Shown here in pieces: positions 7,549 to 62,060 of a DNA stretch of 64,000 nucleotides. The stretch's first letter is position 1. Each line of letters starts with the position of its first letter. The notes beneath the pieces were generated by a model, which ran no database searches, was not told the DNA's origin, and was given only the letters and a program-made list of their open reading frames with translations. Where the stretch lies: IMG/VR virus record IMGVR_UViG_3300032214_000715, positions 62,001 to 126,000 of that record; one strand, 5' to 3'. The translations under genes and the position numbers were made by a program.

Positions 7549-7965
7549 TTAGCCAATTTCGTTTAGTGCGCGACGAAACAAAATTTCTTGCTTGGCAAAG
7601 GCTTGAATTTCCCAGGGACGATTTAGATAATCAGTGTTCTTAGAATATCGCTTACCAGCCCAGCATTGAGCTCCGCGAGTGCTGCCCTTTAGAATTCCCT
7701 TTGTCATCTGAGCTACGTGAACCATTTCGTGTGCCAACGTTATTCCGAGATTTACCGGTGACGCTTTGGAATTCAAGACTACGAAAAACATATTCTTTGC
7801 GCCGGAAATCGGGACCGTGATTCCAGCTTCCGAGCAATCTGCTTTAAGCGTAATCAAAATAGACCCAACATTTCGGTCTATCTTTAGTTGAGACAACAGA
7901 CTTGGCATAATTGCCTCAAGCAACTTGATTTTTTTGCTGGAACGTCCAGAGAATTCGTACTGCAT
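7549..7965 (-). CDS. Zincin-like metallopeptidase
   Basis: AHEMVH...PWEIQA; start taken downstream of the promoter. Confidence 0.65.
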   Translation of the reverse strand: MQYEFSGRSSKKIKLLEAIMPSLLSQLKIDRNVGSILITLKADCSEAGITVPISGAKNMFFVVLNSKASPVNLGITLAHEMVHVAQMTKGILKGSTRGAQCWAGKRYSKNTDYLNRPWEIQAFAKQEILFRRALNEIG

Positions 7966-8021
7966 GTGTATGTTCGCTTTTCTACTCAACAGATACAGTA
8001 TATCATCAATCCTAATTATTG

Positions 8022-8630
8022 TCAAATAATATTGTCATTGTCTAGAATAACTTGCCAGCCCAATCGCAACAAATCAGTGCTAATTTCATCAGTGACTACG
8101 CTCTCGGCCACAAATTTAGCCACTACCATAGCACGGGCGCGTTGCTCTTCCGTCATATCTTCTAATTCGTCGTCTGTGTATTCTCTATTGATACCACTAC
8201 AGTACCAATTAATGTAATCACCTTCCTCACGCATATCAGCAATAATTCCGCCAGCATAGCGCCAGCTACAACTCCAAGTGGTTAGTCCATCTTTCAGAAC
8301 TAGTACAATATTCTCTGGCGTGTCCTCTACTGCGATTTTCTGAAATTCATTGTTACACATAGCCGCATACAAATTCTGTGCGTAGACCTCGCTAGTTCTT
8401 ACTTTTTCTAATACCCAATCAGTGGTTCTTAGATCGTATTCCATATTATTCTGTGTCCAGTCTGGATCTAGTTCTTTGTTATTTTGGTTTATTAACATTT
8501 GATTATAATAATCAACCATAGCTTGAGTTTCCTTATCATTCTCGGGAGTTTTACCATCAGCCGCCTGACGCTCCAAATATTTTTTTTGTTGAAAAGTATA
8601 TCGTTCTGGACTTTTACTAATTTTAGTCAT
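8022..8630 (-). CDS. Hypothetical protein
   Basis: 202-aa ORF, coupled to upstream gene. Confidence 0.75.
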   Translation of the reverse strand: MTKISKSPERYTFQQKKYLERQAADGKTPENDKETQAMVDYYNQMLINQNNKELDPDWTQNNMEYDLRTTDWVLEKVRTSEVYAQNLYAAMCNNEFQKIAVEDTPENIVLVLKDGLTTWSCSWRYAGGIIADMREEGDYINWYCSGINREYTDDELEDMTEEQRARAMVVAKFVAESVVTDEISTDLLRLGWQVILDNDNII

Positions 8631-8815
8631 ATTTCAAATCTTGTTAATTCTACGCCACTAAGAAAATTAGTATTTACCAACTCAGATAAAGCATCAAGTT
8701 TTACTAATATCTGATCGTGGGAAATATAAACCCCGGAAATCATATATTCTTTGTTATTGTAAGTGACTAATTGTCCTGTTTTATATATTGGCAAATAAAA
8801 TACTTTAGTTGGCAT
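8627..8815 (-). CDS. Hypothetical protein
   Basis: MPTKVFY..., overlaps both neighbours. Confidence 0.55.
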   Translation of the reverse strand: MPTKVFYLPIYKTGQLVTYNNKEYMISGVYISHDQILVKLDALSELVNTNFLSGVELTRFEI

Positions 8816-9275
8816 ACCAAATCTCTTTGAAGCCTTCTTCTTCAGTGGGCATTTCAAAATTTTGAATCATAACGCTAACCACATTCCACGGAATAGTTTT
8901 TCCTGGACGATTTGACAATCGTGTCAGTAATTCGCTTTCAGCCGGTGTACGAAACACTACCGCAATCGCATAGTAGTTAGACAGCATGTTGAACTTCTTT
9001 TTTCTGCTAATGACTGACGTAGAAGTTTGATCCCAGATAATATCCTTGCCTTCATCCCGCGCCCGTACTACATCGTCTGCCATTAGTTTTACGGCATACG
9101 GCATGTAGTCTCGAAAGACTTCACTGTAGGTTTGACCCACTGTATTGGCATAGTTTTCTACATGAGCGTCTGTGCTAACAATAGCACAATTTTTAGCCCA
9201 CTCTTGATTTTTGATCCACGTAGATTTACCACTACCTGGAACACCAACTAATACATACAACTTTGGCTGACTCAT
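8805..9275 (-). CDS. P-loop kinase (AAA_33 / polynucleotide kinase-like)
   Basis: GVPGSGKST Walker A; start at MSQPK. Confidence 0.8.
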   Translation of the reverse strand: MSQPKLYVLVGVPGSGKSTWIKNQEWAKNCAIVSTDAHVENYANTVGQTYSEVFRDYMPYAVKLMADDVVRARDEGKDIIWDQTSTSVISRKKKFNMLSNYYAIAVVFRTPAESELLTRLSNRPGKTIPWNVVSVMIQNFEMPTEEEGFKEIWYAN

Positions 9276-9362
9276 TTGTTTTCCATTTAATGATTGATGT
9301 AGTATACTATAGACTGTATTTTTTGTCAAACAAATTCTATGTTATTTATTCACGTGGGAAAT

Positions 9363-9386
9363 AAAAAAGCACCCGAAGGTGCTTTT
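9363..9386 (-). terminator. Intrinsic terminator after tmRNA coding piece
   Basis: AAAAGCACC-TTCG-GGTGCTTTT plus T-run. Confidence 0.85.
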
Positions 9387-9655
9387 AGGTTTTTTCTGTT
9401 GCCCGGTATTTCCTACCGCGATAGCCGGTTTAGGCAGCCATCAGGAATGCTTCATTGTTAGCATTTAAAGGTTTTGCTTCTACAGTCGAGATATCTCAAC
9501 ATTAACGACTTCTGCTTTGCCGATTCTAATCATTTCTTATTAGCTCCGTCGAATCCTTTCATCCCCATAAAAAACATTATATTGCTTTTTATGAAAATGG
9601 TGGAGATGCCGGCATACGATAGCCGGGTCCGCAACTCATCAGATAATGACTTTCA
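9387..9655 (-). ncRNA. ssrA: Two-piece (circularly permuted) tmRNA; tag (A)ANNEAFLMAA
   Basis: Acceptor piece ending CATCTCCACCA (9598) lies upstream of GGGGATGAAAGGATTCGAC (9566); 7-bp acceptor with G3.U; tag frame 9462-9430. Confidence 0.9.
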
Positions 9656-9666
9656 AGGAAAATATC

Positions 9667-10353
9667 CTAGCGAATATTTTTATTTATCTCAATCATTCTG
9701 CCAATTTTTATTAGTTCAGTTTCATATAGCATTCTTCTTTCGTGTGATTTTTTACCTTCGTCAAGATTTACTAAACAACCACTATGAATTATAAGCCCAA
9801 AAATATCAATTAGCTTGGATTCTATCGACAATGCTTCATTTTTTGTCATGTTTTCTTTAAGAATAGATACTGAAATTTCAGAACCAGATTTTTTTATTTT
9901 TTGACGATATTTTCTATGCGAATCATTTCTATCTAAATCGTATGCTCTAGATCCTTGACCCATTCCTATATAAAATGGCTGATGCTGCATTCCAATCGTC
10001 GCCGCAAAAGTAGTGACTCCGTGTTTTCCTATAGCTATTTTTTTAGAAGGATCACAGTGAGCATAAACATAATAAGAATTATCAGTGACGTCTTCGTTAT
10101 ATAAATGAAGAATATCTGTGTTGTAAATGTTGACGCACGACTCAAATACTTCTTTTGAATGCTTATTCTTAGAATAATGACCGTGATTGGATCTCAAATT
10201 ACCTAACATATTTTTTGACCACGTCAGTAATTTTTTTAGTTCTTCTTCTGATTGCGAATCAACTTCTATATTCCATATAGAAGTATTACGTATCTGACCT
10301 TTAGTGTCAGTGACCTGTTTTCTTTTTATTTCCATACTAGTAGTATAAGACAT
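9667..10353 (-). CDS. GIY-YIG (LEM-3-like) homing endonuclease
   Basis: YYVYAHCDP...PFYIGMG...R, plus EALSIESKLI and LVN. Confidence 0.8.
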   Translation of the reverse strand: MSYTTSMEIKRKQVTDTKGQIRNTSIWNIEVDSQSEEELKKLLTWSKNMLGNLRSNHGHYSKNKHSKEVFESCVNIYNTDILHLYNEDVTDNSYYVYAHCDPSKKIAIGKHGVTTFAATIGMQHQPFYIGMGQGSRAYDLDRNDSHRKYRQKIKKSGSEISVSILKENMTKNEALSIESKLIDIFGLIIHSGCLVNLDEGKKSHERRMLYETELIKIGRMIEINKNIR

Positions 10354-10466: not shown

Positions 10467-10658
10467 TTACCAATTCTCCACGCTAGAAATTACAACTTCA
10501 AAGGTGCCTTCAATATCACCAATCTTAGTTTGAACTTTCATAGTAACAGTAGCGCCAATACCGCTGCTATTGTCACTTTCTACTTCAAAAAATTCCACAT
10601 CAGGAAATTTCTTTGACAGTTCAACCATCTTTTCTAAGTCATCACGATGTAGCAACAT
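10467..10658 (-). CDS. Hypothetical protein
   Basis: MLLHRDD..., overlaps upstream gene. Confidence 0.6.
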   Translation of the reverse strand: MLLHRDDLEKMVELSKKFPDVEFFEVESDNSSGIGATVTMKVQTKIGDIEGTFEVVISSVENW

Positions 10659-11130
10659 TTTGCTTACTCTTAACATATTCACGATATTCACGCTGCCAAT
10701 TATGTTCTTCGGGAACATCGTATGGCAATCCTAATTCACCCATCATAAGACGCATTACACGTGTATTTGGACTACGAAATCCTTCTACTAGCATAAAGCC
10801 CATATGTTCACCTACTTGTGCCACTGCGCCACTACGAGCTACTCCTGCGTAACAGTGTACTACAACATTCATATTCTTGTCAAGTGCGTGACGCAATAAA
10901 CCAACCAATTCTTTTGCTTGTGACTCACTGATAAACATTTCAGGATCATCAGCTTCATCGTTGTCATCAATATCAAGAAATTCAAAACGATAAATTTCTT
11001 TGAATTCATGCTTTGGTGTAGGGAACCAGCCTGCTGGATCCATAATTTGAATTAGCATAGAGTTTGATCCAGCTTTGTGATGGTGTCCTATAGGCACATC
11101 GGCAGCGGCTACATTTTCAATCCAGGGCAT
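10642..11130 (-). CDS. Protein tyrosine/dual-specificity phosphatase-like
   Basis: VHCYAGVARS (CX5R). Confidence 0.85.
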   Translation of the reverse strand: MPWIENVAAADVPIGHHHKAGSNSMLIQIMDPAGWFPTPKHEFKEIYRFEFLDIDDNDEADDPEMFISESQAKELVGLLRHALDKNMNVVVHCYAGVARSGAVAQVGEHMGFMLVEGFRSPNTRVMRLMMGELGLPYDVPEEHNWQREYREYVKSKQNVATS

Positions 11131-12354: not shown

Positions 12355-12558
12355 ATGCCGCCGTGCGACTTCATCACTCTGTATGAAATAGGAGTTGGAT
12401 CATTAGCGGTACGACACAGTGAAATTACAACGATTGAACTTACCGCAGAATGCGCTAGTCGCATTACATTAAGCAATGGGTATAGCAAAGTAGTACAAGA
12501 AAATCCAACTAGAATATTGTTCTTAATCAACGCAGCACAAGAATTGTGTAAAGATTAA
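12355..12558 (+). CDS. Hypothetical protein
   Basis: 67-aa ORF following the previous gene. Confidence 0.5.
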   Translation: MPPCDFITLYEIGVGSLAVRHSEITTIELTAECASRITLSNGYSKVVQENPTRILFLINAAQELCKD

Positions 12559-13049
12559 GAATCCCAACTCAATCTAGATGTTTTCATTGCCGGAGCGCCC
12601 GCGTATTTCTTAACAATTTCTTCTCCAGCATCTATAAATCTAAGCGCTCGTAGTCCAACTACATTATTGGTAGTGTCAATGACTTCCTCAGCATTGGGTC
12701 TTTCGCTGTGATTGGATAATAAGAATGAGCTGATATGTATCACTCCAGTACTCTCACTGTATCTCCATCTTTTTGTCTTAGCAAACACAGCAGCATCTTC
12801 TGGTGATAATTTATATTCTATTCTACCAATTGGTATGACATGCTGATTATTGATCCAACGAAGACCCATCATTTTTACGAACCTAGTGTTCTTAATTATC
12901 TGCCAGTCTTCATCATCTATTTTTACAACTGGATCTAGAACAATTAATTCTCCATTCTGAATTGGAACAGAAGCAAATAATCCATTGCCCGCACTCTTAA
13001 TTCGTGACTTGGCCATATAACTCTTTGATGTTACTTCATTAATACGCAT
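12555..13049 (-). CDS. SET-domain protein
   Basis: GNGLFA, NHSERPN and ALRFIDAGEEI...Y motifs. Confidence 0.8.
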   Translation of the reverse strand: MRINEVTSKSYMAKSRIKSAGNGLFASVPIQNGELIVLDPVVKIDDEDWQIIKNTRFVKMMGLRWINNQHVIPIGRIEYKLSPEDAAVFAKTKRWRYSESTGVIHISSFLLSNHSERPNAEEVIDTTNNVVGLRALRFIDAGEEIVKKYAGAPAMKTSRLSWDS

Positions 13050-13567: not shown

Positions 13568-13645
13568 TGGCAGGGGATCCAGGATTTGAACCTGGGAATG
13601 TCGGAATCAAAATCCGATGCCTTAGACCAACTTGGCTAATCCCCT
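13568..13645 (-). tRNA. tRNA-Gln(TTG)
   Basis: Cloverleaf with CCA; 5' end overlapped by the HNH ORF. Confidence 0.92.
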
Positions 13646-14086
13646 TTTGTTGTATTTTCCTCTTTTTTTACCGGATAAAGATGTTGAAATATTCTTTTTG
13701 TGTTCTTCTGATTTTGGTTTTGTGGATCCTTTATTCTTTTTCCCATTTTCAGATAACATATTTTTAGTCTGTTCTTCTCCGTATTTAAGAACAGATCGCT
13801 CGTATGGAGAAAGATGTGTTCCACGGTCTACTTGATCTAAGTGATTATCTTTATATGATCCCCAATAGATATGATTTGGATTTGAACATTTAGGATTATT
13901 ACAGGCATGACACACGATAGCATTGTCTCCCTTTTTAGGGATAGATGTATTAAGAGTGAATGCCAAAAGCCCAGTTAAATGATAAGAATATTTCAATCCT
14001 CTTTCGTCACATTTTTCATATAGTTTAATATGCGTCATTCTTTCATCTTTTGAACTAAACATATATTCTTTAATATCAATTGGCAT
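13622..14086 (-). CDS. HNH-type (zinc-binding loop) homing endonuclease with NUMOD3-like tail
   Basis: VCHACNNPKCSNPNH...N and KSEEHKKNIS; start at MPID after AAGGA RBS. Confidence 0.8.
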   Translation of the reverse strand: MPIDIKEYMFSSKDERMTHIKLYEKCDERGLKYSYHLTGLLAFTLNTSIPKKGDNAIVCHACNNPKCSNPNHIYWGSYKDNHLDQVDRGTHLSPYERSVLKYGEEQTKNMLSENGKKNKGSTKPKSEEHKKNISTSLSGKKRGKYNKRGLAKLV

Positions 14087-14125
14087 AATAATTCCTTTGT
14101 TTTTATTATTTAGTAAAACAACATA

Positions 14126-14158
14126 AATTCTATGCTCTCCCAATTGAGCTAACCCCCA
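14126..14158 (-). pseudogene. Orphan tRNA 5' half
   Basis: TGGGGGTTAGCTCAATTGGGAGAGCA gives acceptor strand plus D-arm, then breaks off before the HNH gene. Confidence 0.65.
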
Positions 14159-14168
14159 TCTGAATAAA

Positions 14169-14230
14169 ACAGGATGCTTTTTACGTTTCAAATTAAAAGT
14201 TTGATGTATAAAGTTTGCTGTACGCATCCT
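14169..14230 (-). ncRNA. Mini-RNA carrying a Lys(TTT)-like anticodon stem-loop
   Basis: AGGATGC/GCATCCT closing stem, TACAGCAAA, TCAAA-CTTTTAA-TTTGA. Confidence 0.55.
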
Positions 14231-14236
14231 AAAATC

Positions 14237-14331
14237 TGGACCGTCGGACAGGATTCGAACCTGCATCAGTATACAGTGATACCACTCCAGTTACCTTTGT
14301 CCGCGTTCGTAGCGCGAGGGGATACCGACGG
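14237..14331 (-). tRNA. Non-canonical tRNA-Arg(ACG) with rewired D-arm
   Basis: 7-bp acceptor, anticodon arm, T-arm and CCA present; only 7 nt where the D-arm belongs. Confidence 0.7.
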
Positions 14332-14341
14332 ATTGTATTCT

Positions 14342-14417
14342 TGGTGCCGCCTCTAGGGATTGAACCTAGTTCTCTGGTGCTTCAAACCAGCGTGAGGACC
14401 ACCTTCACCAAAGCGGC
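14342..14417 (-). tRNA. tRNA-Phe(GAA)
   Basis: Cloverleaf with CCA. Confidence 0.92.
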
Positions 14418-14429
14418 TAAAACTTCTTA

Positions 14430-14504
14430 GGGGTGACCAACGGAATTCGAATCCGTACTATCACGGTCACAGCATGAGGTGCTAACCATTACACTATGGT
14501 CACT
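14430..14504 (-). tRNA. tRNA-His(GTG)
   Basis: Cloverleaf with C discriminator; CCA not fully encoded; -1 base is A. Confidence 0.88.
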
Positions 14505-14519
14505 CCTAAGCAGTCTTTT

Positions 14520-14594
14520 TGGTGGAGGATACCGGGGTCGAACCGGTGACTATGCCTTGCAAGGGCATCGTGTTCCCAACTATACCAATCCCCC
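14520..14594 (-). tRNA. tRNA-Ala(TGC)
   Basis: Cloverleaf, G3.U70, CCA. Confidence 0.94.
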
Positions 14595-14603
14595 AATAAA
14601 ACA

Positions 14604-14661
14604 ACAGGATCCTTATTTTTTCAATTACAAGTTGAATTTTAAAATTTGCTGTAAGGATCCT
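14604..14661 (-). ncRNA. Mini-RNA carrying a Thr(TGT)-like anticodon stem-loop
   Basis: AGGATCCTTA/TAAGGATCCT stem, CAGCAAA, TTCAA-CTTGTAA-TTGAA. Confidence 0.55.
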
Positions 14662-14668
14662 AAAACTT

Positions 14669-14745: not shown

Positions 14746-14752
14746 GGAAATT

Positions 14753-15029
14753 TGGTGGGACCAGGGGGGTTCGAACCCCCGACCAACGGATTAACCTACC
14801 ACTATAGTTTTCACTACCAGTTTCCTGTTTGTGGTCTGGACTATACCTTCATCGTATCATTTCTGACTTAGATGCCCGCCGTCTAGTCTCTACACGTTCC
14901 CATTACTGGGCTTCGCTCGGTATCGCCATTTTACAGGGTTCACCGAATTTGACGGGTTCTACTTACAAAATTTCTTTTGTAGCACTCCTATTTTAAAGTC
15001 CGCTGCTCTACCGACTGAGCTATAGTCCC
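14753..15029 (-). tRNA. tRNA-Lys(TTT), intron-containing
   Basis: Exons 15029-14996 and 14794-14753 rebuild GCGGA-CTTTTAA-TCCGT. Confidence 0.88.
14795..14995 (-). mobile_element. Group I intron (about 201 nt, no ORF) in the tRNA-Lys anticodon
   Basis: AAATTCGGTGAA, GTAGAGACTAGACGG and AAGGTATAGTCC core elements; terminal G. Confidence 0.88.
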
Positions 15030-15088
15030 TTTATCAATCAACAGAACACAGTGTACTCGTTAGGGTAATTACTGTCAACAACTATCGG

Positions 15089-20118: not shown

Positions 20119-20439
20119 TGGTGCCCGGAGCCGGAATCGAACCGGCACGGCCGAAGCCGAGGGATTTTAAGCGTGTTGTCTCAAAGTTTCCAATGAGCAC
20201 GGACTATCTCTTTACCTTCAACATTACTTGTTAAGGCAGTGGGCGTTCTATGCTGGTTATTAAGAGGGCTTTACCTCTCCAGTAGTCTCTACACCTTCAC
20301 TGAATGTATTCAGTGCTTGGCTCGCGATTGCCATTTTACAGGCTCTCCCGAATTAACCCACAGTTTACTCACACATTTCTGTGTGAGGGGGACGGGCTTT
20401 CTGGTCCTCCCTTGTGTCTACCTATTTCACCATCCGGGC
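20119..20439 (-). tRNA. tRNA-Leu(TAA), intron-containing
   Basis: Exons 20439-20408 and 20171-20119 rebuild AGGGA-CTTAAAA-TCCCT. Confidence 0.88.
20172..20407 (-). mobile_element. Group I intron (about 236 nt) at tRNA position 31/32
   Basis: TTAATTCGGGAGA, GTAGAGACTA and AAGAGATAGTCC core elements; terminal G. Confidence 0.85.
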
Positions 20440-24721: not shown

Positions 24722-25318
24722 ATGTTTCACTATGTCTATAGAATTACTAATATAAAAAACAATAAACACTATTATGGCAAAAGATCATCTAAAGTTACTC
24801 CATTTGAAGATTTAGGCAAAAAATATTTCAGTTCCTGTAAAGATAAGTTATTTATTAATGAGCAAAAAAAATTTCCCCAAAATTTCAAATATAAAGTAAT
24901 AAGATGCTTCAATAGCTCAACTAGTGCTATAAATTTTGAAATAAAATTACACAATAAATTTCAAGTAGATATCTCACCTCATTTTTATAATAGGGCAAAA
25001 CAAACATCTAATAAATTTCAGACATCTTACGTTTCTATCGATACTAGAAAAAAATTATCAGATGCGACCAGAAAGACTAATATAGGTGCTATAACGTCTA
25101 AAAAAAGAGCGGAATCTAATAGAAAAAATGGAGACGTTAAATGGCAAAAATATATAGAAATAGTAAACGCTTCCACTATTGATTTTACCAAATATGGGTG
25201 GGCTAAATTATTGGCCGACCTACTAGGAATATCTCATCAACAATCGTCCAAATGGCTCAAAAGGCATTGCCCTGAAATTTATTCAACGTGTTTCAAACGA
25301 AAAAATGGTCCCGCGTAG
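24722..25318 (+). CDS. GIY-YIG homing endonuclease (Seg-like)
   Basis: HYVYRITNIKNNKHYYGKR...YFSS...E...FYN. Confidence 0.88.
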   Translation: MFHYVYRITNIKNNKHYYGKRSSKVTPFEDLGKKYFSSCKDKLFINEQKKFPQNFKYKVIRCFNSSTSAINFEIKLHNKFQVDISPHFYNRAKQTSNKFQTSYVSIDTRKKLSDATRKTNIGAITSKKRAESNRKNGDVKWQKYIEIVNASTIDFTKYGWAKLLADLLGISHQQSSKWLKRHCPEIYSTCFKRKNGPA

Positions 25319-25380
25319 TTGAATCGAACAACTATTCCAAATTTAGAAGATTTGTATATTTTCCATTATATGAACGCGAG
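25306..25380 (-). tRNA. tRNA-Arg(TCT), canonical, nested
   Basis: Cloverleaf with CCA. Confidence 0.88.
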
Positions 25381-25388
25381 AAATTCTT

Positions 25389-25439
25389 ATCACTCCAATT
25401 ACACTGCTACGCTTTAGAAGAGCGTTGTGGTACCGAGGT
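25389..25439 (-). pseudogene. 5' half of a split non-canonical tRNA-Arg(TCT)
   Basis: ACCTCGG-TACCACA-ACGCT-CTTCTAA-AGCGT-AGCAGTGTAATTGGAG. Confidence 0.75.
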
Positions 25440-25492
25440 ATAGATTCAAAGTATATCTGGTGTTTGATTATTTGTCAAGTGTTTGTGTTGAT

Positions 25493-25575
25493 TGGTGCTG
25501 AAGGTGAGACTCGAACTCACGTAGGTTTCCCGACGGCTTACAAAACCGTTGCAATTGCCGCTATGCGACTCCAGC
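25493..25575 (-). tRNA. tRNA-Thr(TGT) with long variable arm
   Basis: Cloverleaf, GG-GAAA-CC extra arm, CCA. Confidence 0.88.
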
Positions 25576-25799
25576 GTTACTATCTTTATTTAGTCTCTAT
25601 TATAGGCGCAATAATTTTTTTGTCAAACACTGTGTTGTCCGAAACTGCTTTAGTGTCATGATCGTCAATAAAGACGGCTCCGATATTGTTGACACAATTT
25701 GTTCCATTCATTAATTACGCGTTCGTTTATCGTACATGAGATTTCCCAATTACTCATTTTTAATCCTTTCAGTTGATAAATATATTTAAGGAGAATAGT

Positions 25800-26176: not shown

Positions 26177-26270
26177 CTGTTAGACCATCATTATAGGCAC
26201 GGCTAAAGCAGGGCATTGACCATAATGTCTGCTCTGCTTTATGTACAATAATGACTCTGAGTGAATTCAT
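26163..26270 (-). CDS. Putative leader peptide containing all 20 amino acids (35 aa)
   Basis: MNSLRVIIVHKAEQTLWSMPCFSRAYNDGLTGVQV; AAGAG RBS; ATAAATA at about 26291-26297. Confidence 0.7.
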   Translation of the reverse strand: MNSLRVIIVHKAEQTLWSMPCFSRAYNDGLTGVQV

Positions 26271-26403
26271 AGTATTTCTCTTTTGTAGTATATTTATCAG
26301 AACTTATTAAACTCGCTAGAAAATCGCAAAATTTTGATGTTTTTGTTTTTTGCTAGTGTTGTTGATTAACAGTTCACTAACTTTATTTAGTGTTAATAAA
26401 AAA

Positions 26404-26988
26404 TTACTGCTTATTATCGCGTTTTTTTGAATAAAAAGTGTGATTGCCTACTGTCATAACTGGATCGTAATTCCATTTTGGTTTTACGGTATGATTATGA
26501 AAGAACAATACATTTGTTGGCACAATATCACTCCAGGCGTTTTCTGTTAATACTTTACGCGCTATATCTTCTGCTTGACTATATTTGACATTTTTAACGG
26601 GAGTTTCTTTTCCTTCGCATACCCAACTAAATTGACAAGTTACTCGTTCTTGTTCATCAATGATTACTGAGTTTTTAGCGTAAATTACAGCACATGGATT
26701 TTTTTCGAATCCGTGTTTAATACGATTCATTACTACACGAGCAACCAGTACTTGACCCATAAATGGTTCAGAACCAGCTTCGTGATATATATTAGTTGCC
26801 ATACATCTTAGATATTCTTTATTTAACACCGTTATATTATGCTTGCCGCTGGGTGAAGTAGCATAATGCTGTTCGTGTATTAGCTTATTGTTGTATTTAA
26901 TTCCAATATTGAATGCCACTAGTGCCACCATCACTAGCAAAATTAAATAAAAAAGATAAGTCACTATCTTAGAGATAGAATTTTTCAT
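26404..26988 (-). CDS. SleB/CwlJ-like cell wall hydrolase with N-terminal TM segment
   Basis: CMATNIYHEA, VVMNR, CQFSW and GNHTFY motifs. Confidence 0.9.
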   Translation of the reverse strand: MKNSISKIVTYLFYLILLVMVALVAFNIGIKYNNKLIHEQHYATSPSGKHNITVLNKEYLRCMATNIYHEAGSEPFMGQVLVARVVMNRIKHGFEKNPCAVIYAKNSVIIDEQERVTCQFSWVCEGKETPVKNVKYSQAEDIARKVLTENAWSDIVPTNVLFFHNHTVKPKWNYDPVMTVGNHTFYSKKRDNKQ

Positions 26989-55277: not shown

Positions 55278-58200
55278 TTATGCTCCGCCTATCTCTCCAG
55301 TGTTGAGCAGACGAACCGGAACGTAGATGAATTCAACTGCCTTAGCTGGCTCAATTGCTATATCAATCCACAATTCATTTCTATCTATGCGTGCGGGAGT
55401 ATTATTACTCTCATCACATACCACTACGTAGTCATAGATTCCTCGTTTAGACAATATGTCGGCCATTAATGTCTGTACTACGCCGCGTGCTTCGTTACGA
55501 GTGATAGTATCATTCGGCTCAAATATAAACGGACGTAATGCTCGCTGTAACTGATAACGAATATAGCACACTAATCTAGCCACGTTTGTTCTATCAAGTG
55601 AACTTTGACTATCAAAGCTGTTTTTATTACCGTAGTTTAATATTCCTAGATTGGTGAAATAAGAAATTGGGTTGATAAAGTTTGTATATTCAATATCACG
55701 TAGAGCAACACGATTCTTTGTTACCGTAAACTCACCTGTAGCGGCATCAATATAACCGATGTTACTTGCGTTATCAACTATACCACGACGCTGACCAGCG
55801 GGCGCAAACCAAGGATAAGCAACATTATCGCTGTAAATCATAGTACGTAGTATCATATGACTAGCAGGAACAGTTACTTCAGCCCCAGTTAAGTCGGTTG
55901 TGATTCCACTTGGGTAGTATAGACCCATATAAGTGTTACGAGTTACTAGACCGTCTTCGCCTGTGCCACTAGCGTTAGAGGCGTTTGTAGCCCAGTTGAC
56001 TATTGCGTTGGCATCAGCGGGTAATCTTAATGGAGTGTCGCCTATTACATAAGCAGTTTGTCCACGATCATTATTTAATGTTACCATATCTGGCTGTAGC
56101 TCAGGGTATCCGCAAGCAGCTATTAGATTAATAAATGTGTCTTCTTCACGTATTTGTGTGTTAACATTTATTGCGTTCTTTAGCGCTTGTACTACCATAT
56201 GTCTTTGCGCCTTACGACCCATATATGGAGATCCATTATTTTTCAATCCACTTACCGACACCCAAGTATTTCGTTGAGCTGGAATTGTTCCAGAAAAATC
56301 AGCACTATTAAAGTAGTTAGTGCGATATTCCTTTACATTGTATCCACTACGACGAGTGTTAAACAGTAGTGTTCCACGTGGGTATAGTGTTGGATCTGGA
56401 GCGTCCAAGTCTACGTAGTCACTTAATAATAGACCAGCGATTGACGGGAAGGCACTAGTAACTGGATCTGTGCTTCCGTTAGAAGCCCAACGTGCGTCCG
56501 CGAATACTACACCGTTTTCGCTTGTTTGATCGGTGTTATCAATACGAACCCATTGATTTACTTGACCAACTGCTTGCCAGCGATTTATTACAGGATAATT
56601 TTCCAAATCACTAGTATCAATCCATAAATCTCCAAATTGTAATGGCAGACCAGCGGAATTTGTGGTCGGAGCAATCGGAGAAATAAGCGGACCGCTAGTA
56701 TCAGTTTGTGGAGTGCCAGTTGATTTTGGAAGTCCGTTAGCTGCGTAAGCAACGTTACGATATCCGCGCCACTGTCCGCCAACGTTAGTCATGATATCAA
56801 CTTGATTTACGCTACTGTAATACCACTGAGTTCCATTTAGTGGGTATTGAGTAGGAACTATTTCGTTAGGGATATAAGCTACTATTCTCCAATCACTTAG
56901 TTGTACCGTATACTGTGGAGTTGCGAATCCGCTTAGCCATCTTACTTGTTCAATACCACCGTCATCATCAACCGCAGTAACTTCTATTTGATATGAACCG
57001 TTTAGTGGGGAGGCTTCAGTAATAGTAAGAGCGGCACCGACTACGTATCCGTCTCCAGGGGCTGTTACTGTAAAAGAGGGTATATATCCAGTAGTTTGTA
57101 CTTGAAATAGTGCCTCGCCTGAATTTACCTCTATGTCGGAGTATGTAACAGTCTTATAAGGACCCCATTTTGCGCCCGGAGTAACTTCGCTTACAAAACC
57201 AAGCTGAGTTAGTAAAGAGCTTTGCCCGTCAAGTATAATAACTCCACCCTCGGTATGCTCTAGCACAATTGCTCCAGCAGTAGATACAGATGCCTTTGTG
57301 TAATCAATATTGGCAGCAGTCCAAGCGGCCACAAAAGCACTAGCATCTTGTGTTGCTGGACTACTTGGCATAACTATTTCGTATTCATCACTTAGTGCGT
57401 TGCTACTTGGAAAGCTAACTCTAACCTTAAGAGTTGCACCCGCTGATATTGCGGGACTAGCTACTGTGCCGACAAACAGTGATGAGCCGCTTGAGAATCT
57501 GCGATACACTTGAAGTGGTCCTACAAAGTTGGTAGGATTAGTGTTGTACTGAGCGTAAAGTGAACCCTCTGTAATATTTCTTCCACCAGAACTGTCTAAT
57601 GTACTGTTAATAGTCCAATCGTTAGTACTCATCGGAGCGGATACTGATACGAATGACCCTAATGCCGCACTGTATTGATTGAATACTAGATTTGTTCCGG
57701 CATTGGCTGAGTTGGTTTTAATCCAAACACTGCCTGTTGGGCGAGGCTGACTGTCCGAACTTCTCCATAGTGGTTGTTGAGCGTTAGTTCCAAATAGCAC
57801 CTGTGGTGAATTGTAAGTGCCGCTTCCAATTCCTATTTCTGTAAGAACAGTATTTGAACCAACAGGAGCAATTATTATGGCTTGATCCACTTCACTGTAA
57901 ATCTCCAATCTTCCACCAACAGCAGCAGCAGAAACAAATGGAACGTTTGCCTCTTCAATCAAGTCAACAAGTTCACCTAGTGTGTTAGCTGGAGCAGCTG
58001 GAATAGTAATGGTGGTACCATTTATAGAGAACGCAGCTCCAGCTGTTAATGAAGTCACTACCTGTGATCCTTGAATGGTAGGCCAATTATTTCTCCACTC
58101 GGAACCACCTACGGAAACCCACTGATTATTTTTTGCTTTATACCAGTATGTGTGATATGTGTCTGGATTATCAGCTAGTGTAAGATTAGCTGTATTGGTC

Positions 58201-58778
58201 TTCATAGAAATAGCGTAGTCACCAATATTTCCAATAGCAGAAGATGGGCGACCAGATGGGGCATCAGCCATATCACTAGTTTCCATTACAATTAGTGGAG
58301 TCTTGTTAATGAAGTTTCCAGTTACCTGATCAAATTCAAAAATTCCCCAAGTAGTATTTGTTGTATCTAGCCAGTATGTTCCGTCGCTTACGTCAGCCGC
58401 GGGTCTGGTAGTTCTACCCACTAATGATGCCAAATCAATATCGGCACGTAGCACATAGCATAAATTGGTAAGACCCAATACGCTATAGGCGGCCATTAAA
58501 CCGTATTCATTTAACTCATAACCTTGAATGGGTGTACCATTTGTGGTCTTGTAAAAGAATGGATTTCCAAATAGAGTAGTCAAGTCTCGCTGACTAGTTA
58601 CTCTGTATAACTTGTTGGCATTAGCAGCAATAGTGCCAGTCGCTACTCCCGTTCCCGCCGCATTTGATTTATTTTGAGCAGTTGCTAAAACAATAAGAGG
58701 AACTGATGCCGGTGCTGCCGGTAAATATTGACTCTCGTCAACTATGCTTACTTGTACGCCTGGACTGTTTAGTGCCAT
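55278..58778 (-). CDS. gp18: Contractile tail sheath protein
   Basis: SPGV N-terminus; PWFAPAG, RG, INPI, FEPND and CDESNNT motifs. Confidence 0.93.
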   Translation of the reverse strand: MALNSPGVQVSIVDESQYLPAAPASVPLIVLATAQNKSNAAGTGVATGTIAANANKLYRVTSQRDLTTLFGNPFFYKTTNGTPIQGYELNEYGLMAAYSVLGLTNLCYVLRADIDLASLVGRTTRPAADVSDGTYWLDTTNTTWGIFEFDQVTGNFINKTPLIVMETSDMADAPSGRPSSAIGNIGDYAISMKTNTANLTLADNPDTYHTYWYKAKNNQWVSVGGSEWRNNWPTIQGSQVVTSLTAGAAFSINGTTITIPAAPANTLGELVDLIEEANVPFVSAAAVGGRLEIYSEVDQAIIIAPVGSNTVLTEIGIGSGTYNSPQVLFGTNAQQPLWRSSDSQPRPTGSVWIKTNSANAGTNLVFNQYSAALGSFVSVSAPMSTNDWTINSTLDSSGGRNITEGSLYAQYNTNPTNFVGPLQVYRRFSSGSSLFVGTVASPAISAGATLKVRVSFPSSNALSDEYEIVMPSSPATQDASAFVAAWTAANIDYTKASVSTAGAIVLEHTEGGVIILDGQSSLLTQLGFVSEVTPGAKWGPYKTVTYSDIEVNSGEALFQVQTTGYIPSFTVTAPGDGYVVGAALTITEASPLNGSYQIEVTAVDDDGGIEQVRWLSGFATPQYTVQLSDWRIVAYIPNEIVPTQYPLNGTQWYYSSVNQVDIMTNVGGQWRGYRNVAYAANGLPKSTGTPQTDTSGPLISPIAPTTNSAGLPLQFGDLWIDTSDLENYPVINRWQAVGQVNQWVRIDNTDQTSENGVVFADARWASNGSTDPVTSAFPSIAGLLLSDYVDLDAPDPTLYPRGTLLFNTRRSGYNVKEYRTNYFNSADFSGTIPAQRNTWVSVSGLKNNGSPYMGRKAQRHMVVQALKNAINVNTQIREEDTFINLIAACGYPELQPDMVTLNNDRGQTAYVIGDTPLRLPADANAIVNWATNASNASGTGEDGLVTRNTYMGLYYPSGITTDLTGAEVTVPASHMILRTMIYSDNVAYPWFAPAGQRRGIVDNASNIGYIDAATGEFTVTKNRVALRDIEYTNFINPISYFTNLGILNYGNKNSFDSQSSLDRTNVARLVCYIRYQLQRALRPFIFEPNDTITRNEARGVVQTLMADILSKRGIYDYVVVCDESNNTPARIDRNELWIDIAIEPAKAVEFIYVPVRLLNTGEIGGA

Positions 58779-58907
58779 ATTATTTTCCTTTATCTAAATA
58801 ATTACTGTGATTATAGAATTTCTTTTATCACTAAATTTATTTATGATAAATTTCAAAAAAACGCTACTTAAAAACTCTTCGCAAAGAGTTGATATCTAAA
58901 TATAGAT

Positions 58908-59255
58908 ATGAGTAGACCAATATGCCCGGCATGTGGCAAGCACTATGTAGCCCCAAACTACTACAAGAACGAAGTAAGACACTATCGCAGTCGCTGTAGT
59001 ACTTGTATTAAAGGTAACAAAAGAATAAAAGAACCAGAGCCGCGATGGAAAATAAGCGGGTACAAGAAAAAAGCCACATGTGACTTATGTGGCTTCAAAG
59101 CAAGTTATAGTAGTCAAATTACTGTGTTTCACATAGATGGAAATCTCAATAATTCTGCGTTATCAAATCTACGTAGCGTGTGTTTATGCTGCGTAGAAGT
59201 TGTAAAACGTAAAAACGTTAACTGGATTCGTGGAGATTTAGAAGTAGATTTTTAA
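58908..59255 (+). CDS. Zn-finger/HNH-like protein
   Basis: CxxC pairs; HIDGNLNN...NL. Confidence 0.7.
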   Translation: MSRPICPACGKHYVAPNYYKNEVRHYRSRCSTCIKGNKRIKEPEPRWKISGYKKKATCDLCGFKASYSSQITVFHIDGNLNNSALSNLRSVCLCCVEVVKRKNVNWIRGDLEVDF

Positions 59256-59841
59256 CCGACTCATAAGTGAGCGCTAATGGTCCATTATTATCTATTACAC
59301 AATCATAATCCCATTCAATGCTGCTGTATTCACTAGCGTGTATGTTTTTGTACTTCTTAGCAAACTGAAGTGTACGACCAGTACGTTTGTACTCATCTAG
59401 CCACTCGGGATCATCACCGCGAACTACACGTGCGGTAATTCCACCAAGTCTCTTGACGCACTGTAGCTCATTGATAAACCGACAATCAGTGATTACAATA
59501 TTTTCGCTGGCAGATAGCAACTTACGTTCTAGACTGGCAATCCATATTTCACTGTGAAAGTTGTCTCGCATAATCTCAGTAGCATACTCCTGTAATACAA
59601 GACGAGGAGTTAAATTTGATATACTCAATCTCTCTGCCCACCAGATATCTACAGTTTCTCGCCAGGCACGAGATTTTAGTGTGCGACCTTCCAGTAGCTC
59701 GCGATCCCAACCAAAAATAACAGACACAGAATCTTTTACAGAATCGGCCCAACTAGCGCGAACAAAATTATGCTCGTTTACCAAATAGTCAGCAACTGAG
59801 TCCTTGCCCGAATTTATAAAACCACTAATACTAATTATCAT
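59218..59841 (-). CDS. Deoxynucleoside monophosphate kinase
   Basis: GFINSGKD, TPRLVLQ, ITDCRFINE and HASE motifs (T4 gp1-like). Confidence 0.88.
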   Translation of the reverse strand: MIISISGFINSGKDSVADYLVNEHNFVRASWADSVKDSVSVIFGWDRELLEGRTLKSRAWRETVDIWWAERLSISNLTPRLVLQEYATEIMRDNFHSEIWIASLERKLLSASENIVITDCRFINELQCVKRLGGITARVVRGDDPEWLDEYKRTGRTLQFAKKYKNIHASEYSSIEWDYDCVIDNNGPLALTYESVKNLLLNLHESS

Positions 59842-61622: not shown

Positions 61623-62060
61623 TTAGTTAGCTACAATACGATTTACTCTTACGTAAGTAGCATCAAAAATATCGGTCTTAACCACGCCGTAATCGTTCGC
61701 TTCATGACGAACGATATAATCGTTAGCGGTGGTGTAGTAGAGATTCTGTGGACCACTGCCCCAGTTAACTACTACATGCCCGTCGTGATCGGCTAGTTTA
61801 GCTAGCTTGACGATCTTTACTGGACGACATTCTCCATTACCCAAGTCTTCTTTTGTATTCTTAAAAGTTTCTGGGCTCACGATCCAACGTTCGTTCTTAA
61901 CTCCAGTAAGAATATAATCACCTACACCATACGGCACTGGATTTGGATTTTCAAGCGATACTAATGTTCCAGCTTCAGTTGCGATTTCATATCGCTCAAC
62001 ACGATCTTGCCTTTTATAACACTCAAAAGAATTTGAGTCAAACCACGATTCATCAATCAT
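61623..62060 (-). CDS. Hypothetical protein (PGDYG-like)
   Basis: SLE...GDYILTG...ERW...F; two-repeat layout. Confidence 0.7.
   Translation of the reverse strand: MIDESWFDSNSFECYKRQDRVERYEIATEAGTLVSLENPNPVPYGVGDYILTGVKNERWIVSPETFKNTKEDLGNGECRPVKIVKLAKLADHDGHVVVNWGSGPQNLYYTTANDYIVRHEANDYGVVKTDIFDATYVRVNRIVAN

Follow-up and report, generated by a model that had tools for sequence, protein, structure and literature searches.

What occupies the gaps between the genes of a phage tRNA cluster? The question is raised by a 64,000-nucleotide (nt) stretch of DNA, referred to throughout as the window, which spans positions 62,001 to 126,000 of the IMG/VR virus record IMGVR_UViG_3300032214_000715. The initial annotation of this stretch picked out two mini-RNAs, here called E1 and E2, which share a frame around an isolated Lys(UUU) or Thr(UGU) anticodon stem–loop, and proposed that they act as anticodon decoys or as ligands of a Ro/TROVE-type or other RNA-binding protein. 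We estimate a probability of roughly two in three that E1 and E2 are Y-RNA-like, multi-copy, phage-restricted RNAs, in which a constant handle docks a Ro60-like protein and a tRNA-mimic module meets tRNA-directed factors.

The source record is 239 kb long, ~68% complete and 40% G+C; its size indicates a jumbo phage. ARAGORN and Rfam scans found 26 tRNA genes, a permuted transfer-messenger RNA (tmRNA) and two group I introns on the minus strand of the window. E1 (14169–14230) and E2 (14604–14661) both lie on this strand (5′→3′), co-oriented with the 26-tRNA cluster and where they had initially been placed. They are inside the cluster, immediately after tRNA 3′ ends, and are followed by a tRNA fragment in the case of E1 and by tRNA-Ala in the case of E2. 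The ordinary spacers between tRNAs of this cluster are without the frame.

Two framed anticodon arms

Read 5′ to 3′, E1 and E2 both open with UUUU, from which a stem strand of 7 nt leads to the motif (G/U)UACAGCAAA. An AU-rich spacer then precedes a hairpin of 5 bp that closes a 7-nt loop, and an A-rich spacer, the closing strand and GUU complete each element. Each has a 7-bp terminal stem, and the length from stem to stem is 60 nt in E1 and 56 nt in E2. Their parts are as follows, with the basis of each assignment in brackets; R1 is the covariance model of the family described in the next section.

14168–14235, minus strand: E1, complete frame RNA from UUUU to GUU, with a Lys(UUU)-like anticodon-arm mimic (sequence; R1, 76.1 bits; Rfam Dicty_Class_I_RNA, 19.2 bits, full length)
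14224–14230, minus strand: E1, 5′ stem strand AGGAUGC (pairs with 14171–14177; family-wide covariation)
14214–14223, minus strand: E1, single-stranded motif GUACAGCAAA, with core CAGCAA at 14215–14220 (sequence and family consensus)
14188–14204, minus strand: E1, anticodon-arm mimic UCAAA-CUUUUAA-UUUGA, with triplet UUU at 14195–14197 (fold; 15 members show UUU on similar AU-rich stems)
14171–14177, minus strand: E1, 3′ stem strand GCAUCCU (sequence)
14168–14170, minus strand: E1, tail GUU (post-stem G in 100% and U in 97% of copies)
14598–14666, minus strand: E2, complete frame RNA, with a Thr(UGU)-like anticodon-arm mimic and exact CCUUACAGCAA (R1, 72.8 bits)
14655–14661, minus strand: E2, 5′ stem strand AGGAUCC (pairs with 14606–14612)
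14645–14654, minus strand: E2, motif UUACAGCAAA, with core CAGCAA at 14646–14651 (sequence and family consensus)
14620–14636, minus strand: E2, anticodon-arm mimic UUCAA-CUUGUAA-UUGAA, with triplet UGU at 14627–14629 (sequence)
14606–14612, minus strand: E2, 3′ stem strand GGAUCCU (sequence and family consensus)
14603–14605, minus strand: E2, tail GUU (sequence and family consensus)

Neither element has a D or a T arm, only the 5-bp stem and its 7-nt loop. Neither was called as a tRNA by ARAGORN or by Rfam RF00005, and both are without an encoded CCA, whereas the neighbouring tRNAs encode one. The hairpin of E2 recurs in identical form in at least nine other phage loci. A 17-mer common to E1 and E2 matches both with 0 mismatches, where 0.64 chance matches are expected in the window at 3 mismatches; judged within the window alone, it is weak evidence for an element pair.

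A covarying RNA family restricted to phages

R1 was built from a seed of 28 short copies, including copies from cultured phages, and its search yielded ~200 copies in 98 uncultured phage loci, often several per locus. When IMG/VR was scanned with no more than the 5′ half, at least 119 loci came up, with 76 distinct instances in which a perfectly complementary closing strand was present and was followed by GU. The consensus was derived from 80 copies that do not match the first search pattern, and hence is unbiased by it: (G/A)UUUU-AGGAUnn-nU(U/A)CAGCAA ... nnAUCCU-GUU(n)U(w)U. Over 143 distinct copies, those 80 included, there is little or no variation in CAGCAA or in the G that follows the stem. 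A count of covariation on the seed alignment would be biased because the seed was selected for pairing, and the terminal stem was judged on the 143 distinct copies: pairing holds in 99.7% of stem cells, compensatory changes occur at 7 of 7 pairs, and 0 of 500 shuffles equalled that. This family evidence is decisive for E1 and E2 as real elements, and the description of two mini-RNAs with a shared frame, an exact 5-bp stem, a 7-nt loop and no D or T arm is upheld by the ~200 copies and the covarying stem.

By the searches made here the family is phage-restricted and essentially absent from prokaryote genomes. A strict two-half pattern gave three matches in 596 gigabases (Gb) of prokaryote genomes, every one on contigs of 0.6–2.3 kb from metagenome-assembled genomes, as compared with at least 120 loci for the same pattern in IMG/VR. 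The complete genomes of the cultured phages Xanthomonas XaC1, Ralstonia RSP15 and Stenotrophomonas DLP_6 have 4–5 copies each, all within tRNA regions, and the window's genome has a further copy, outside the window, with a 130-nt insert. On 12 family loci, tRNAs were the only Rfam matches at the gathering score, and frames and tRNAs were co-oriented; no Rfam family reached its own gathering score on any frame tested. The frame was looked for in the T4 stable RNAs rnaC and rnaD and was not found, and Megablast to cultured phages returned tRNA matches only.

Other classes of element were considered and ruled out. An intrinsic terminator does not fit, as the loops of 40–370 nt are too large. An integron attC-like site, or a miniature inverted-repeat transposable element with target duplication, is excluded by flanks that are kept between copies and not duplicated within each, and by covariation of the stem. 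A tmRNA-like resume codon (GCA AAC) would come with a conserved short reading frame and stop, which the copies are without; an armless tRNA is ruled out by the lack of CCA and by the long linkers, and known small ribozymes by the lack of Rfam matches or core motifs.

The insert often displays anticodon arms or tRNA-like bodies

The insert ranges from ~25 to ~370 nt across the family. The form of an anticodon arm (5-bp stem, 7-nt loop, U33 and a purine at 37) was found in 55 of 110 distinct short copies, as compared with 1.5 expected from shuffles. In these 55 the displayed triplets are UUU (15), UGU (13), UCU (Arg; 6), GUA (Tyr; 4), GUU (Asn; 4) and then scattered others. UUU and UGU together account for 51% of displayed triplets but for 6% of the real tRNAs of the same loci (n = 1257 in frame-bearing loci; Lys(UUU) 2.5%, Thr(UGU) 3.7%). 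Identical AU-rich stems (UUUGA/UCAAA, UUAGA/UCUAA, UUUCA/UGAAA) bear different triplets, and a short second helix in the short copies (UAC/GUA or UGC/GCA) covaries; we therefore regard the anticodon arm as a designed, swappable module rather than a decayed tRNA. All mimics of Lys, Thr or Asn type keep U36-A37-A38-U39, and several have an exact UAAUCA.

The check that had been proposed, whether the loop always has anticodon form in relatives, thus gave a divided answer: it does in these 55 copies, and it does not in the other half of the short copies or in any long copy. The remaining short copies hold other hairpins, for example a recurrent ...GCUAAACUUUWUGGUUGUCUAGC... class. The long copies hold a permuted tRNA-like body, in the order hairpin, T arm, capped acceptor stem, D arm. 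Against the Rfam YrlA family RF02553 (gathering score 69), one such copy (locus L008) scored 30.8 bits over the full length, and another, upstream of the protein gene described below, scored 34.8 bits.

The RNAs are linked to a gene for a Ro60-like protein

A candidate partner was located by clustering neighbouring open reading frames (ORFs), not with the TROVE hidden Markov model (HMM). Over 216 frame-bearing loci, the commonest neighbour is a protein of ~475 amino acids with DUF2828 and DUF7788 domains, present at 61 of them. The Pfam model PF11443 matched 4 of 4 frame-bearing genomes tested and 0 of 14 control genomes. In the window's genome (G000) the protein, P0001, is encoded at 57295–58719 on the minus strand, ~3.3 kb beyond the start of the window.

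In a reciprocal test we started from the protein, took the best 80 of its 589 IMG/VR relatives and scanned the 75 of these 80 loci that were new to the analysis; all 128 R1 matches lay on the strand of the gene. An independent pattern search over 71 protein loci found at least one upstream frame in 67, and in 45 the frame ends 19–60 nt before the start codon; 171 frames lay upstream of the gene, with 3 located downstream and a further 2 on the other strand. The frame ahead of the gene sits just before the Shine–Dalgarno sequence. In G000, four tandem frames directly upstream of the gene (58734–59348, minus strand, outside the window; loci L003 and L231), one with a YrlA-like tRNA domain, lead straight into P0001, the last ending 18 nt before the ATG. 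One frame of this array has the variant motif UUUCGGCAA; TCATCCT-GUU occurs a second time after it and could pair with the same 5′ strand to form an alternative, longer stem.

Cultured phages show several arrangements. In Listeria phage LMSP-25 the gene is immediately preceded by three tandem frames, and an RtcB ligase is encoded three genes beyond; the RtcB HMM PF01139 had no match in the window's genome. Mycobacteriophage BobsGarage has three frames just downstream of the gene, and the Felix O1-like phage Si3 has two frames. With tblastn the protein was found in 709 records of cultured phages, among them Felix O1-like phages, P100/A511-like phages and mycobacteriophages; its annotation varies between ‘RNA-binding protein’, ‘vWFA protein’, ‘DUF2828’ and ‘Ro-like RNA binding protein’. 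A literature search on DUF2828 returned incidental mentions only.

The fold of P0001 was modelled with AlphaFold. A single-sequence prediction was poor (predicted local distance difference test, pLDDT, 40) and was replaced by a model based on an alignment of 109 homologues (pLDDT 91.3; predicted template modelling score 0.89). The 13 best matches of this model in the PDB are all Ro60/TROVE proteins, matched over their full length (E 4e-10 to 6e-6; template modelling score 0.54–0.60; ~500–550 columns), from Thermus phage phiLo, Xenopus, human and Deinococcus (Rsr); below them stand isolated von Willebrand factor A (vWA) domains only. Among Swiss-Prot models the matches are Ro60, telomerase p80 and TEP1. 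P0001 is thus predicted to consist, like Ro60/TROVE, of a helical-repeat ring and then a vWA domain with a metal-ion-dependent adhesion site (MIDAS) motif, whose residues D278, S280 and S282 are invariant among homologues. A profile search of P0001 against the PDB reached TROVE at E 2.1 only. Synteny at 45 of 71 loci, co-occurrence and the modelled Ro60 fold lend good support to the suggestion that the RNAs serve as ligands for a Ro/TROVE-type protein whose gene lies beyond the window, and we expect that the RNAs would be bound by P0001.

A published study of Listeria phage CKA15 (PMC12282133) reports a highly transcribed unannotated region at 26,236–26,727. We considered it as evidence of expression and set it aside because the three frames of that phage map to 25,216–25,586, with no overlap. 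The same study detected CKA15_055, a homologous Ro60-like protein, by mass spectrometry of purified virions, with 57% coverage, so the protein may be packaged and delivered with the genome. In LMSP-25 (locus L311, 2380–3060), a ~650-nt unannotated stretch with a strong sigma-A-like promoter lies upstream of the three frames; it is the positional counterpart of the most transcribed region of CKA15, is not a frame, and may be another structured RNA.

Relation to Y RNAs and to Dictyostelium Class I RNAs

Bacterial Y RNAs of the YrlA type have the module order V-T-AS-D and carry a Ro-binding motif, GNCGAAN0-1G, near the 5′ end, which is GGUCCGA in animals (Chen et al. 2014, PMC4201824). The phage RNAs resemble them in that their ends pair into a terminal stem beside a conserved 5′ motif, and in being modular with a tRNA-mimic module, which in the long copies follows the same V-T-AS-D order and matches RF02553. 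They are also encoded beside a protein predicted to have the Ro60 fold with a vWA domain, on the same strand. Mycobacteriophages are among the known carriers, and the protein is annotated ‘Ro-like’ there. They differ in the protein, which is of the DUF2828/DUF7788 type and is missed by the TROVE Pfam model, and in the number of frames, as a genome has many of them, dispersed over its tRNA clusters. The tRNA-like domain (T, acceptor-like and D arms) of the long relatives is missing from E1 and E2, which show an isolated anticodon arm only. RF02553 had no match to E1 or E2, and the long relatives remain under its gathering score. The new handle, the divergent protein branch, the miniature members that display an anticodon and the likeness to Class I RNAs described next would, on present comparisons, be additions to what is known of Ro60 and Y RNAs.

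At permissive thresholds, Dicty_Class_I_RNA (RF01414) was the only non-tRNA Rfam family to match both elements. E2 scored 35.4 bits over model positions 1–56 of 56 (E 5e-6 to 7e-6) and E1 19.2 bits over the full length, both under the gathering score of 41.5; other phage copies scored 13–30 bits. Class I RNAs are 42–65 nt long; their terminal stem has 6 bp, its 5′ strand adjoins the 11-nt motif CCUUACAGCAA, the ends take the form AAG...CUGU, and the middle is variable. They are reported as unique to Dictyostelia, and their known partner in Dictyostelium is the RNA recognition motif protein Rnp1A (Kjellin et al. 2021, PMC7919456).

The likeness is close in several respects. E1 and E2 fall in this length range, and phage and dictyostelid RNAs share a terminal stem of 6–7 bp, a variable middle and multiple copies. 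The 11-mer is exact in E2 and reads GCGUACAGCAA in E1; the dictyostelid invariants C, C, A, A all fall within the phage invariants C, A, G, C, A, A; and Felix O1-like copies have the Dictyostelium spacing (a 4-nt offset), whereas the spacer is 1 nt shorter in most phage copies. In DNA the ends read UAGG...CCUGUU, which would fit the form A(A/G)G...CUGU, next to AAG...CUGU in the dictyostelid RNAs. The phage elements also differ in residing in a bacteriophage, not an amoeba, and in being without the Dictyostelium upstream sequence element (DUSE) promoter found ~60 nt upstream in dictyostelids. We do not claim membership of Class I because the scores, the promoter and the taxon all speak against it. 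The likeness may reflect homology or convergence, and we found no paper that links Class I RNAs to phages. The match of the handle, exact in E2, gives a first mechanistic lead on Class I RNAs, the function of which has been open since 2004.

What the RNAs may do

By analogy with Ro60 and its Y RNAs (PMC4201824) and with a survey of jumbo phages (PMC7824862), a mechanism can be proposed. The handle, that is the 7-bp stem, the single-stranded U-W-CAGCAA and the 3′ GUU, would be the docking site for the phage Ro60-like ring protein, P0001 in the window's genome. The variable module would provide tRNA mimicry, as an isolated anticodon arm in the short copies and as a YrlA-type tRNA-like domain in the long ones. 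The RNAs would be transcribed together with the tRNA cluster and excised at their U-rich flanks, perhaps by the tRNA-processing machinery, as suggested by the U-rich flanks, the U at −1 and the G-U-U after the 7-bp stem. The resulting ribonucleoprotein (RNP) would show its mimics to tRNA-directed factors, the most plausible of which would be host anticodon nucleases that the RNP sequesters or diverts. The module might instead tether enzymes of tRNA repair or decay, in the way that a Y RNA tethers polynucleotide phosphorylase to Rsr, or titrate enzymes of N6-threonylcarbamoyladenosine (t6A) or U34 modification.

The nuclease AriB of the PARIS system has Lys(UUU) and Thr(UGU) as prime targets and Asn(GUU) as a secondary one, recognises U36-A-A-U-C|A41 and also requires contacts with the D loop for cleavage (PMC12409363). 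Variants of T5 tRNAs act against it (PMC11464382, PMC12409363). The frames resemble that system in lying in a phage tRNA cluster, in displaying Lys(UUU), Thr(UGU) and Asn(GUU), which are the AriB targets, and in keeping U36-A37-A38-U39 in copies of these types, several with the exact UAAUCA site. They differ in that they are not tRNAs and cannot decode, so that they would serve as decoys or baits and not as replacement tRNAs. Since AriB cleavage needs the D loop, which the mimics are without, a bait that binds without being consumed is conceivable, if speculative. A role as decoy for anticodon nucleases, as initially annotated, is plausible: one in two short homologues keeps the anticodon form, on a scaffold that is nearly constant, and the triplet bias overlaps the AriB targets, while different modules are displayed by the remaining short copies and by every long copy. 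The Lys(UUU)/Thr(UGU) bias suggests a way for phages to bait such nucleases that is distinct from resistant replacement tRNAs.

Several observations weigh against the conclusion that these are Y-RNA-like RNAs with a Ro60-like partner and a tRNA-mimic module. Because half of the short copies are without an anticodon-shaped loop, anticodon display does not define the family, and the bias to UUU, UGU and UCU could mirror a U36-A37 determinant, such as that of the t6A machinery, instead of nucleases. The handle, U-W-CAGCAA with 3′ GUU, is neither GNCGAA nor GGUCCGA, and in an HMM search of G000 the TROVE model PF05731 had no match to P0001, which Pfam assigns to DUF2828 and DUF7788. E1 and E2 lie ~17 kb from P0001, though on the same strand, and in XaC1 a distance of 200 kb separates the RNAs from the gene. 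The copies counted come from related phages and are not phylogenetically independent. Public runs that contain parts of the region (DNA runs and two metatranscriptomes) hold mainly conserved tRNA pieces of other organisms and are uninformative on transcription or processing of E1 and E2.

Three other explanations have to be set against the same data. RNA-binding proteins commonly autoregulate through a mimic of their natural RNA ligand, and the position of the frame just ahead of the Shine–Dalgarno sequence, 19–60 nt before the start codon at 45 of 71 loci, is what would be expected if its chief role were in cis, as leader or operator of the Ro60-like gene, serving autoregulation, translation or stability, with the copies in tRNA clusters, E1 and E2 among them, as duplicated by-products. 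This seems unlikely to us, as most copies do not adjoin the gene, with 171 upstream frames for 71 genes and multiple copies in tRNA clusters, the BobsGarage frames are downstream of the gene, and E1 and E2 lead into a tRNA fragment and tRNA-Ala, respectively. Moreover, the variable modules are themselves kept and follow a pattern, that of an anticodon arm or of a YrlA-like domain.

That the frames are always co-oriented with tRNAs and between them, and that their flanks, with U at −1 and G-U-U after the stem, resemble the contexts preferred by RNase P, RNase Z or RNase E, would fit processing or punctuation signals of a polycistronic tRNA transcript, or attenuators, with neither a trans role nor a protein partner of their own. 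We consider this very unlikely: ordinary tRNA spacers of the same cluster do without a frame, the invariant single-stranded CAGCAA and the patterned display module would be superfluous, and the tight linkage to one protein family would be left unaccounted for. Least credible, and in our judgement highly improbable, is that the frames are decayed fragments of tRNA genes or a miniature mobile element with 7-bp inverted ends and random pieces of tRNA. The inserts do hold tRNA pieces (T arms, permuted tRNA-like bodies), homing-endonuclease-like ORFs lie nearby, and a contig from a relative in which E1 is fused to E2 suggests recombination between copies. Transposon ends would keep their sequence, whereas the stem covaries; the flanks are kept across copies and not duplicated within each; and triplets swapped on constant AU-rich stems, unlike those of real tRNA arms, are far from a random sample of tRNAs.

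The Y-RNA-like reading with a Ro60-like partner can be extended, in a form that we hold to be doubtful. A handle of stem, CAGCAA and (C)UGU might mark a second, DUF2828-type branch of Ro60 proteins, shared by phages and eukaryotes, with the Class I RNAs as its Y RNAs and with the phage RNP as a programmable anticodon display that neutralises immune nucleases acting on tRNA, PARIS AriB or PrrC for example. Short of that, a large RNA family, absent from Rfam and with a candidate protein partner, occupies stretches of phage tRNA clusters that carry no annotation, and the presence of that partner in 709 cultured phage records makes the family testable at the bench at once. Ro60/Y-RNA biology would be extended by a divergent protein branch, a new handle motif and miniature Y RNAs with a bare anticodon arm as effector module.

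Other features of the tRNA region

A DNA contig from another aquatic metagenome joins position 14183 directly to 14623, so that E1 is fused to E2 and the intervening 439 bases are skipped. This indicates a relative with a single hybrid element and without the intervening tRNAs, and suggests recombination between frame copies.

Directly past E1 (~14120–14155, minus strand) lies the 5′ part of a tRNA, comprising acceptor strand and D arm, without a 3′ half, and it is followed by a 155-amino-acid ORF (13625–14089, minus strand) without a Pfam match; the two may be a tRNA gene broken by an inserted ORF. On the other side, between E1 and tRNA-Phe, a tRNA-like gene not called by ARAGORN (14231–14340, minus strand) combines a T arm and an acceptor stem of 7 bp with an encoded CCA and a hairpin loop CUACGAA (Arg ACG-like). 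It is without a clear D arm and has ~37 extra nt, and its sole match is a weak one to tRNA-Sec (19 bits).

The anticodon loop of a tRNA-Lys(UUU) (14746–15040, minus strand) is interrupted by a group I intron (Rfam Intron_gpI, 14814–15005). One metatranscriptome contig joins 14794 to 14997, which could be a spliced tRNA-Lys or the intronless tRNA of another organism. The second group I intron of the tRNA region is at 20180–20414 and the permuted, two-piece tmRNA gene at 9385–9708, both on the minus strand.

Genes around the RNAs encode a PP-loop ATPase (of the TilS/TtcA-like tRNA-modification type), an RNaseH-like DUF458 protein, an AAA_33/zeta-toxin-like kinase, a dual-specificity-phosphatase-like protein and a SET-domain protein; the coordinates of these five genes, given as one list, are 8979–9578 and 7606–8091 of locus L231 and 8808–9329, 10642–11130 and 12558–13049 of the window, all on the minus strand.

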